Below are positions 52,699 to 54,603 of a DNA stretch of 64,000 nucleotides, piece after piece. The stretch comes from Macrostomum lignano (taxonomy: Eukaryota): assembly GCA_002269645.1 (NCBI GenBank), contig NIVC01000415.1, positions 186,001-250,000 of the forward strand, given 5' to 3'. A model generated the notes under the pieces. It was given only the letters and a program-made list of their open reading frames with translations. It was not told the origin of the DNA and made no database searches. The first letter of the stretch is position 1, and each line of letters opens with the position of its first letter. A program made the translations under genes and the position numbers.

Positions 52699-54345
52699 CT
52701 AAGCGCTGAGTCCACAGCCGGTGGCAGCAGCGGGCAGCCGCGAGCAGGTGAGCACGCCAGCCCAGCCTGGGGGTGTCGGGGGCGCAGCCTCCCTCGGACT
52801 GCGGTAGGTGGCCTGCCGGAACACAGGCTGCCTGTCGGCCAGCTGGAACCGCAGTCCGGGGCCGGTGAACAGCCGCTGACTTGCCAGATTATCGTCGCCA
52901 ATCTTTGCCAGCAGCTGGCCAGGCTGAGCACCCAGCGCCTCGGACAGGTAGGCAATCAAGCACTGGACAGCCTCGCGGCCCAGGCCCCTGCCTCTGTAGG
53001 CCGGTTCGGCTATCATCACTTCGAGTTCGAACTCGCGACCTTCGCTAACAACCTCCTCGTTGTCTTGGTTGTCCTCTTCGGTGGCGCTGATGTTGGGAAT
53101 TAAAAACGAATTCACGTCGCCAATCATTGCCGCCAACTCCGCTGCCGGCTGGCGTTGCCATGGCAACGAAGCTGACTCTTTGTTGGACGCCTGGCGGATA
53201 AACAGGAATGAAAGACGCGGCTGCCGTTTGAAACATGCACGAGTCCCGATTTCCAGTATACTAATTAAAGATTACATAGAAGATTGTTGGCGATAGTATG
53301 ACTAACCGCGGCCAATTCTGCTTAACTTTGCATGCTTCTGCACTTACAGCAGCTAAGGCGTCTCCACACTCCTTACCGCAGCTGGACCCTACACCCCGAC
53401 CGCAGCTGGACCCCACACCCCTGACCGCAGCTAGACCCCACACCCCTGACCGCAGCTGGACCCCACACCCCTGACCGCAGCTAGACCCCACACCCCTGAC
53501 CGCAGCTGGACCCCACACCCCTGACCGCAGCTGGACCCCACACCCCTGACCGCAGCTGGACCCCACACCCCTGACCGCAGCTGGACCCCACACCCCTGAC
53601 CGCAGCTGGACCCCACACCCCTGACCGCAGCTGGACCCCACACCCCTGACCGCAGCTGGACCCCACACCCATTACCGCAGCTGGACCCCACACCCCTGAC
53701 CATAGCTGGACCCCACACCCCTGACCATAGCTGGACCCCACACCCCTGACCGCAGCTGGACCCCACACCCCTGACCATGGCTGGACCCCACACCCCTGAC
53801 CATGGCTGGACCCCACACCTATTAACGCAGCTGGTCCCCATAAGCGCAAAGAATCCACTTACCGGCACTTTAGACCCCATAGCGGATTCCAGAGTGTCTC
53901 TGTGCAGCACAATAAAGGTCAACTTGTCGTCTGAATTGCGCCAACTACGCTGCATTTCGAACTCTTCCTGTCAAGGACCGGGTACGGTCATAGAGGGTAA
54001 GGAGGGTAAATCATTGTGGAGAATCTTTCCTGATAATAGGCGGGTACGGTCATAGAGGGTAAGGAGGGTAAATCATTGTGGAGAATCTTTCCTGATAATA
54101 GGCAGGTACGGTCATAGAGGGCGAATAATCTTCATCTCGATCTCTAGCAGTCGTCAATAACGCAGTTACAAATACCGGATAATGAAAACTGAACAGCTCA
54201 CCTCTAGGCTAAGAGGCTCTGACGCCGTGGCCTCCAATATATCAGGCTGCAGCATCCACTGGTGGTAGCGGGTCACGTGATAAGCTTCATACGGCACCAG
54301 CACGAGAGACTGGCTAACGCAGTAGGAGAATTCATTTAATCTCAT
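52699..54345 (-). CDS. NAT9: N-acetyltransferase 9 (GNAT). Exons 54202-54345, 53863-53967 and 52699-53190.
   Basis: Hand-read exon 1 is [48 protein letters not shown]. Exon 2 is [21 protein letters not shown]. Exon 3 contains [34 protein letters not shown]. These match recalled NAT9 motifs, and all junctions are phase-0 GT-AG. Confidence 0.93.
53383..53820. repeat. 25-bp minisatellite in NAT9 intron 2 (GACCCCACACCCCTGACCGCAGCTG)
   Basis: Direct reading. Confidence 0.95.
53980..54121. repeat. ~62-bp tandem duplication (2 copies plus a partial third) in NAT9 intron 1
   Basis: GGTACGGTCATAGAGGGTAAGGAGGGTAAATCATTGTGGAGAATCTTTCCTGATAATAGGC is repeated. Confidence 0.9.
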
Positions 54346-54508
54346 TTTGCTGCTGCTGCTGCTGCAGACGCCTCTGACGTCTGGCTTCTTCTAACTCGAC
54401 TGGCAGGTCAGACAGGGGCTTGAAGAAGCGGTGCACGAGCTCCGAGCCTACAGCCGCCGATGCCAAGAATATTGCTGTGAATTTGACAAACTGCCAGGTG
54501 GATCCCAT
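54332..54508 (-). CDS. UQCC6: 58-aa micropeptide, BRAWNIN/C12orf73/UQCC6 (Drosophila Sloth2)-like complex III assembly factor
   Basis: Hand translation is [58 protein letters not shown]. It matches the recalled Sloth2 pattern (QYLKF...LAS...GSQAVH.YYKPLEDL.V.IE) and human BRAWNIN (GAEVVHRYYRP). It is absent from the ORF track because it is under 60 aa. Confidence 0.85.
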
Positions 54509-54603
54509 GCGGAATTATGCGGCACCGCCTGACTGCTAGCGAGCTGTCACTGAGTCAGCTGGTCTGTCGGACATGAATTGCCAAGGTTGGGCAGCTGCTA
54601 ATG

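Follow-up and report, generated by a model that had tools for sequence, protein, structure and literature searches.

A putative UQCC6-family micropeptide gene overlapping the start of NAT9 in the flatworm Macrostomum lignano

The stretch of DNA analyzed here (the window) comprises 64,000 nucleotides (nt) of contig NIVC01000415.1 of Macrostomum lignano (assembly GCA_002269645.1). On its minus strand, a small open reading frame (smORF) of 58 codons, homologous to UQCC6/BRAWNIN/Sloth2 (the DUF4516 family), occupies positions 54332-54508 and runs into the beginning of the NAT9 gene. The smORF was taken from the list of open reading frames (ORFs) and is matched by Pfam PF14990 and by a hidden Markov model (HMM) of our own; an AlphaFold model of its product is also available. 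It begins with the ATG at 54508 and ends with the TGA at 54334-54332, its last codons being CAA AAT GAG ATT AAA TGA. The ATG of NAT9 at 54345 is found in the +1 frame relative to the smORF, 163 nt from the smORF ATG. The two coding sequences share 14 nt (54332-54345, minus strand, ATGAGATTAAATGA), which are read as NEIK followed by the stop codon in one frame and as MRLNE in the other, and which are identical in all three homeologous copies of the locus.

The sequence before the NAT9 start has several features of interest. The smORF start lies in the context TTCCGCATGG (CGCATGG), with C at -3 and G at +4, and the NAT9 start in the context AGCAAAATGA (AAAATGA), with A at -3. The 160 nt that separate the two starts are free of ATG in all frames. 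A (CAG)5 run at 54350-54364 encodes the poly-Q tail of the smORF and is at the same time a part of the NAT9 leader; the other two copies have (CAG)4. The hexamer ATTAAA at 54335-54340, made by the NAT9 codons R-L-N, coincides with the smORF stop and could, speculatively, be a poly(A) signal of a short smORF-only mRNA. A 12-codon upstream ORF (uORF) is located at 54536-54574, also on the minus strand. The original prediction had described this layout, namely the smORF coordinates, the overlap, the gap free of ATG, the start contexts, the (CAG)5 run and the position of the 12-codon uORF, correctly at the level of sequence.

The NAT9 gene consists of three exons, all on the minus strand, which were spliced by eye from the sequence. 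Exon 1 (54202-54345), reading MRLNEFSY...SLE, was delimited by the sequence, the protein PAA83538.1, orthologues and a NAT9 HMM; exon 2 (53863-53967) and exon 3 (52699-53190), the latter containing the GNAT domain and the stop codon, by the sequence, the protein match and the HMM. The spliced product of 246 residues is equal, residue for residue, to the M. lignano protein PAA83538.1 of NCBI. It has 687 homologues, many of which are named NAT9 or alpha/beta-tubulin N-acetyltransferase 9, with the domain Acetyltransf_3 (PF13302). The N-terminus MRLNE is conserved, being MRVNE in Paragonimus and MRLN in other orthologues, and because it matches the orthologous N-termini, the ATG at 54345 is taken as the true start of NAT9. 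The smORF, as predicted, thus overlaps a genuine and conserved start codon. A 334-residue NAT9 match from Ixodes was considered as a fusion and rejected; it is a duplicated gene model.

The identity of the smORF product was examined by profile comparison. Pfam PF14990 (DUF4516, the C12orf73/BRAWNIN/UQCC6 family) matches the peptide with 27.1 bits (E = 3.3e-6), the cut-off being 27. Since this score is borderline, the assignment was tested independently by phmmer, by a profile and by our own HMM. The latter was built from 108 family members, with the flatworm sequence left out, and was used to search 3334 six-frame ORFs, taken from the window and from five fetched loci. It matches the smORF with 46.8 bits (E = 4.4e-13), which is its sole match in the 64 kilobases (kb) of the window, the next best having E = 3.9. 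A phmmer search of the 58-residue peptide against 1.84 billion representative proteins returned two specific matches only, of 66 and 93 residues, and both belong to DUF4516, their Pfam scores being 62 and 83 bits. When the three sequences were combined into a profile, it retrieved 110 proteins, all with PF14990 and many named BRAWNIN, UQCC6, C12orf73 homolog or sloth 2. A word-indexed homologue search with the 58-residue peptide gave no matches, and a sequence search of the PDB found no UQCC6 structure.

The peptide has the properties of the family: a size within about 50-100 residues, an N-terminal hydrophobic helix and an aligned G-[SA]-Q-x-V-H-x-Y-Y-K-P-L-x-D-L motif. All six positions that are invariant in an alignment of 40 sequences (G2, G21, V25, H26, P31 and L32) are present, and the near-invariant W5, F10, D34, L35 and E42 of the same alignment are likewise retained. 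The N-terminus reads MGSTWQF where the near-invariant family sequence is MPAGVSWGQY; G, W, Q and the aromatic residue align, and P, A, V and one G are missing. The tail resembles LKEEAKRQKKLE of the closest relative, and other members of the family also have tails rich in Q. The AlphaFold model consists of two helices, residues 4-28 and 32-57, with a mean predicted local distance difference test score of 85, and hydropathy reaches its maximum of 1.59 over residues 7-25. The proposal that the smORF encodes a BRAWNIN/UQCC6 protein was borne out by both HMM values and by related matches that were all DUF4516. From the sequence comparisons, the smORF can be assigned with high confidence to the UQCC6 family as a micropeptide gene with a divergent but alignable N-terminus. 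More specifically, it is taken to be the M. lignano orthologue of UQCC6/BRAWNIN/Sloth2, whose product would be a single-pass micropeptide of the inner mitochondrial membrane serving complex III assembly. Both the location in the inner mitochondrial membrane and the role in complex III assembly have been demonstrated for UQCC6 in human, zebrafish and fly (PMC7066179, PMC9681215).

In Drosophila, a choanoflagellate, a sea squirt and the lamprey, sloth2/UQCC6 directly follows its paralogue SMIM4/sloth1 on one transcript (PMC9681215). An HMM made from two SMIM4 parts detected no SMIM4/Sloth1 (PF15114)-like ORF in the 64-kb window (best E about 1), and the same HMM does find the expected ORF in the eukaryotic metagenome assemblies L004/L006, which contain the closest relative of the flatworm peptide, and L008. 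These have the SMIM4-UQCC6 tandem without NAT9, at 5700-6200 of L004 (equivalent to 2557-3165 of L006) and at 61-504 of L008. In L004, an intron interrupts the SMIM4 ORF, and about 25 nt separate the stop of this ORF from the UQCC6 ATG. SMIM4 and UQCC6 are fused in two proteins of the databases. NAT9 is not found near UQCC6 in the sampled loci L004/L006, L007 and L008, none of the 110 family proteins has an acetyltransferase domain, and no UQCC6-NAT9 pairing was found among the papers listed by a literature search. In the trematode Paragonimus skrjabini miyazakii (JTDE01002552.1, locus L005, 316-842), RPS25 lies on the same strand as NAT9 and ends 98 nt before the NAT9 start. The suggestion that the smORF adjoins NAT9 in place of its usual SMIM4/Sloth1 neighbour, and that no such locus was known, is in agreement with these searches. 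As SMIM4 accompanies UQCC6 in the sampled relatives and NAT9 is near none of them, the pairing with NAT9 is derived, relative to the loci sampled.

The assembly of M. lignano, a polyploid of recent origin, contains three copies of the locus, L001 (identical to the window), L002 and L003. The smORF ATG, frame, stop and the 14-nt overlap are kept in all three. Within the 177 nt of the smORF the copies differ by two substitutions (I13V and a synonymous one) and by one in-frame CAG indel, (CAG)4 versus (CAG)5. Divergence within the locus is lowest over the smORF and NAT9 exon 1, with 4 substitutions in 400 nt versus roughly 2-15 per 100 nt elsewhere, numbers too small for a formal test. The 12-codon uORF, which had been proposed as an element preceding both ORFs, has no ATG in L002 and L003 and was rejected as a part of the system; being unconserved among the copies, it is irrelevant to it. 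At the same place (54562-54584, minus strand), L002 and L003 read GGCCAATTG, a CCAAT box, in place of which the window copy has GGCAATTCATG and with it the ATG of the non-conserved uORF. Judging from its sequence, the CCAAT-box site may be a promoter element directly downstream of a microsatellite.

The gene calls of GCA_002269645.1 include, at all three copies, the NAT9 coding sequence only and leave the smORF uncalled. An exact-sequence look-up in a collection of 5.8 billion clusters gave no separate protein with the smORF sequence. Older gene models are more extensive. The UniRef entries A0A1I8INA9 and A0A1I8HTF9 have 14-15 residues of translated leader before MRLNEF, which correspond to the NAT9 frame read back to the in-frame TAG at 54393-54391. 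As both begin right after this TAG, the annotated exon extends upstream of the CAG run. A third entry, A0A1I8GFE2, an older UniProt/WormBase ParaSite model, starts at codon 7 of the smORF (FVKFTAV...) and passes into NAT9 by skipping 22 nt. The gene identifiers Mlig022367, Mlig019531 and Mlig032180 were found neither in the literature nor in the supplements of Grudniewska 2018 and Wudarski 2017.

The most likely mode of expression, to which a probability of roughly 0.5 may be given, is that both ORFs are present on one mature mRNA and are read by leaky scanning. UQCC6 would have lost its ancestral tandem partner SMIM4/Sloth1 in this lineage and would now be the 5'-proximal cistron of the NAT9 transcription unit, with a lineage-specific Q-rich tail of the smORF extending 14 nt into the NAT9 coding sequence in the other frame. 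A part of the scanning ribosomes would initiate at the first AUG, which is weak, with C at -3, and produce the micropeptide; the remainder would pass the 160 nt free of AUG and reach the NAT9 AUG with its A at -3. The sequence features expected of leaky scanning are present, a weaker CGCAUGG being followed by a stronger AAAAUGA with no ATG in 160 nt, the gap alone having p ~0.1. The older models covering both ORFs suggest that there is transcript evidence for both. Leaky scanning has been shown experimentally for the fly sloth1-sloth2 gene (PMC9681215).

Several observations weigh against this reading. The sequence fits a putative bicistronic mRNA read by leaky scanning, and it allows trans-splicing of a spliced leader at CTGCAG (54367-54362) equally well. 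The ATG-free gap is not clearly beyond chance, since there is no ATG in about 10% of mononucleotide shuffles and in 76% of codon-order shuffles; gaps of at least this length make up 8% of all inter-ATG gaps on the minus strand, and the gap is not statistically unusual. A perfect match to the acceptor motif YTNCAG is found 16 nt upstream of the NAT9 ATG. The old models may have originated from pre-mRNA or from error-prone assembly, and chimeric gene models are common in flatworm operons (PMC12582326). On the side of the peptide, the Pfam score exceeds its cut-off by a borderline 0.1 bit, the N-terminus departs from the near-invariant family sequence, and the three copies, with two substitutions in the smORF, are too similar for the ratio of nonsynonymous to synonymous substitution rates (dN/dS). 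In Paragonimus, where RPS25 precedes NAT9 and there is no DUF4516 ORF, the linkage is absent.

Termination-reinitiation, which had been offered in the original prediction beside leaky scanning, ranks below it and is the weakest of the options given there. It is judged less likely because the upstream ORF, at 58 codons, is long, and because a ribosome terminating at its stop, 11-14 nt past the NAT9 AUG, would have to move back. A classical operon resolved by trans-splicing of a spliced leader (SL) is ruled out by the sequence. The stop of the smORF (54334-54332) and the single A(A/T)TAAA hexamer (54340-54335) are downstream of the candidate acceptor at 54362 and of the NAT9 AUG at 54345, whereas the stop and poly(A) signal of the upstream gene should precede the downstream acceptor. 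Because the ORFs overlap and both the stop and the hexamer are beyond the NAT9 AUG, one pre-mRNA cannot yield two complete mRNAs.

A possible, though clearly less probable, explanation is alternative processing of a common precursor. SL trans-splicing at CTGCAG (54362-54367, minus strand) would give a NAT9-only mRNA, the smORF being discarded as outron, and transcripts left unspliced would act as mRNA for UQCC6, with a possible end after the ATTAAA at 54340-54335. Each transcript could give one product or the other but not both, and the situation would be comparable to the SL1-type operons of Caenorhabditis elegans. In these operons trans-splicing competes with 3'-end formation, and Williams et al. 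are said to have described them in 1999 as having no intercistronic spacer. The M. lignano SL (CGGTCTCTTACTGCGAAGACTCAATTTATTGCATG) is a 35-nt leader ending in ATG; about 30% of the genes of this animal, with enrichment for conserved ones, are trans-spliced at acceptors of the motif YTNCAG, and 15% are in operons (PMC8629364). The CTGCAG, which contains the first CAG of the run and lies 16 nt before the NAT9 ATG, is the only YTNCAG match found by a motif scan of 54620-54330, and the original suggestion that the (CAG)5 run could serve as a trans-splice acceptor is in keeping with this. One such match is nevertheless near chance expectation, which is about one per 500 nt. The ATTAAA at the smORF stop fits this explanation as well, but it is dictated by the conserved NAT9 codons R-L-N and may be incidental. 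The spacing of RPS25 and NAT9 in Paragonimus resembles that of an operon and suggests, for this trematode and perhaps for flatworms at large, that NAT9 could be a downstream gene subject to trans-splicing. A nuclear-receptor gene is situated upstream of the smORF on the same strand, with mostly repeats between them, a pattern reported for M. lignano operons (PMC8629364). Against alternative processing, the old models join leader sequence upstream of the CAG run to the NAT9 coding sequence. An SL added at any CAG of the run would place its ATG in the smORF frame; the resulting uORF of 10 codons would overlap the NAT9 AUG, an awkward though not disqualifying consequence.

Trans-splicing might also take place at the 5' end of the smORF, with leaky scanning retained for NAT9. 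The CAG at 54491-54493 (minus strand) lies just before codon 7 (TTT) of the smORF and is a candidate acceptor at which the SL ATG would be in frame with the smORF. That A0A1I8GFE2 starts exactly at F7 is a weak hint in this direction. The UQCC6-NAT9 unit, perhaps located downstream of the nuclear-receptor gene in an operon, would then be trans-spliced at this CAG, and the SL-donated AUG would start a UQCC6 variant of 53 residues. If true, one flatworm mRNA would encode, in two overlapping frames, two unrelated conserved proteins after a lineage-specific exchange in which NAT9 replaced SMIM4 as the partner of UQCC6. Three conserved residues, G2, W5 and Q6, lie upstream of this CAG, as of any internal acceptor, and speak for use of the genomic ATG at 54508 rather than an SL-donated one, and this variant is considered rather unlikely.

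It is still less probable that the smORF is a regulatory overlapping uORF that damps NAT9, its peptide being a decaying relic and the functional UQCC6 being encoded elsewhere. The divergent N-terminus and the borderline Pfam score would be consistent with decay, an overlapping uORF necessarily reduces initiation at the main AUG, and a second genomic UQCC6 is conceivable. The family core, however, has been kept (46.8 bits, with the invariant G, VH and PL..DLP) over more than 500 million years, which implies long-term purifying selection on the peptide. The ORF is also intact in all three copies, and the profile search, limited as it was by the word index, returned no other DUF4516 protein of M. 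lignano.

A single UQCC6-NAT9 fusion protein, made by the removal of 54395-54374 as in A0A1I8GFE2, is very improbable. The gene model exists and the 22-nt gap (54374-54395, minus strand) is bounded by GT and AG, which yields an in-frame fusion of smORF and NAT9, but 22 nt are far under the workable size of a metazoan intron. The stretch is present in all three genomic copies, and the supposed intron was rejected as an annotation artefact on comparison of the model with these copies. The NCBI models moreover start NAT9 at MRLNE, like all orthologues, and the skipped part aligns with the conserved family tail ...LxxxEExxRxQ. That the smORF is a chance ORF of the NAT9 leader, its homology being without meaning, has next to no probability: short ORFs occur frequently and the gap without an ATG lacks significance, but the idea is refuted by the E-value of 4.4e-13 of our HMM, its single match in the window, and the DUF4516 proteins being the best matches among 1.84 billion representatives.

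The surroundings of the locus are rich in repeats. A repeat scan found an (ATAG/TATC)n microsatellite, (ATAG)168, at 54605-55270, which stops, on the upstream side, about 95 nt short of the smORF ATG, and a minisatellite of 26 units of 33/34 nt lies further upstream (55620-56485). Within and next to NAT9 there are arrays of 62 nt x2.3 in intron 1 (53979-54121), of 25 nt x19 in intron 2 (53364-53840) and of 40 nt x12 right after the stop codon (52200-52671). The lengths of the arrays at the NAT9 locus vary among the three homeologous copies. The upstream nuclear-receptor gene consists of a zf-C4 DNA-binding exon and a ligand-binding-domain exon (57253-57645 and 58635-59666, minus strand), and its distance to the smORF, with the repeats subtracted, is near the 1-kb limit used for calling M. 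lignano operons. Six other long single-exon ORFs of the window, at 13601-14665 (+), 19958-20830 (-), 27993-29590 (-), 30895-31821 (+), 33113-33571 (+) and 44445-45158 (-), were judged by eye; they may encode two G-protein-coupled receptors, a BTB/kelch protein, a sterol-desaturase/fatty-acid-hydroxylase-like protein, a DGAT2/MOGAT-like fragment and an adenylate kinase.

To return to the favoured reading of one mRNA translated by leaky scanning, the arrangement can be compared with several known systems. It shares with the sloth1-sloth2 gene a DUF4516 micropeptide, two ORFs of the same strand only a few nt apart, and a weak upstream AUG followed by a downstream AUG with A at -3 (PMC9681215). 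UQCC6 is the downstream cistron in the fly gene and the upstream one in M. lignano, where its partner is an unrelated GNAT acetyltransferase of 246 residues rather than a paralogous micropeptide. The ORFs overlap by 14 nt in M. lignano, whereas they are 5 nt apart in the fly gene, and leaky scanning, experimentally established in the fly, is a proposed mode for M. lignano. Mitochondrial microproteins encoded by a uORF of an unrelated gene are also known, MIEF1-MP being one of them. SLC35A4-MP/AltSLC35A4 is another small conserved mitochondrial membrane protein that is encoded in the 5' leader of a functionally different main ORF (PMC12183330). As there, the two proteins of the M. lignano locus would stem from a single dual-coding gene. 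The uORFs of both are host-gene-specific, whereas in M. lignano a member of an ancient, free-standing family has been captured before NAT9 and overlaps the main start. With the SL operons of flatworms and nematodes, the locus has in common near-zero spacing, an acceptor motif just upstream of the downstream start, and chimeric mis-annotation (PMC8629364, PMC12582326); it differs from them in that the upstream coding sequence runs past the acceptor and the downstream AUG.

With this peptide a known family gains a new, divergent member, and the arrangement is that of an ancient micropeptide gene placed, as upstream cistron, in overlap with an enzyme gene to which it is unrelated. No new principle is involved, since there are precedents both for mitochondrial microproteins encoded by uORFs and for bicistronic smORF genes. 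The finding would add a missing conserved respiratory-chain assembly factor, uncalled at all three copies, to the gene set of a flatworm model. M. lignano, in which transgenesis and RNA interference can be combined with SL trans-splicing, offers a compact test case for leaky scanning versus trans-splicing over two overlapping conserved ORFs. For the family, the locus suggests that a micropeptide gene of ancient origin can part from SMIM4, its ancestral bicistronic partner, and come to lie in front of an unrelated gene as an overlapping upstream cistron.

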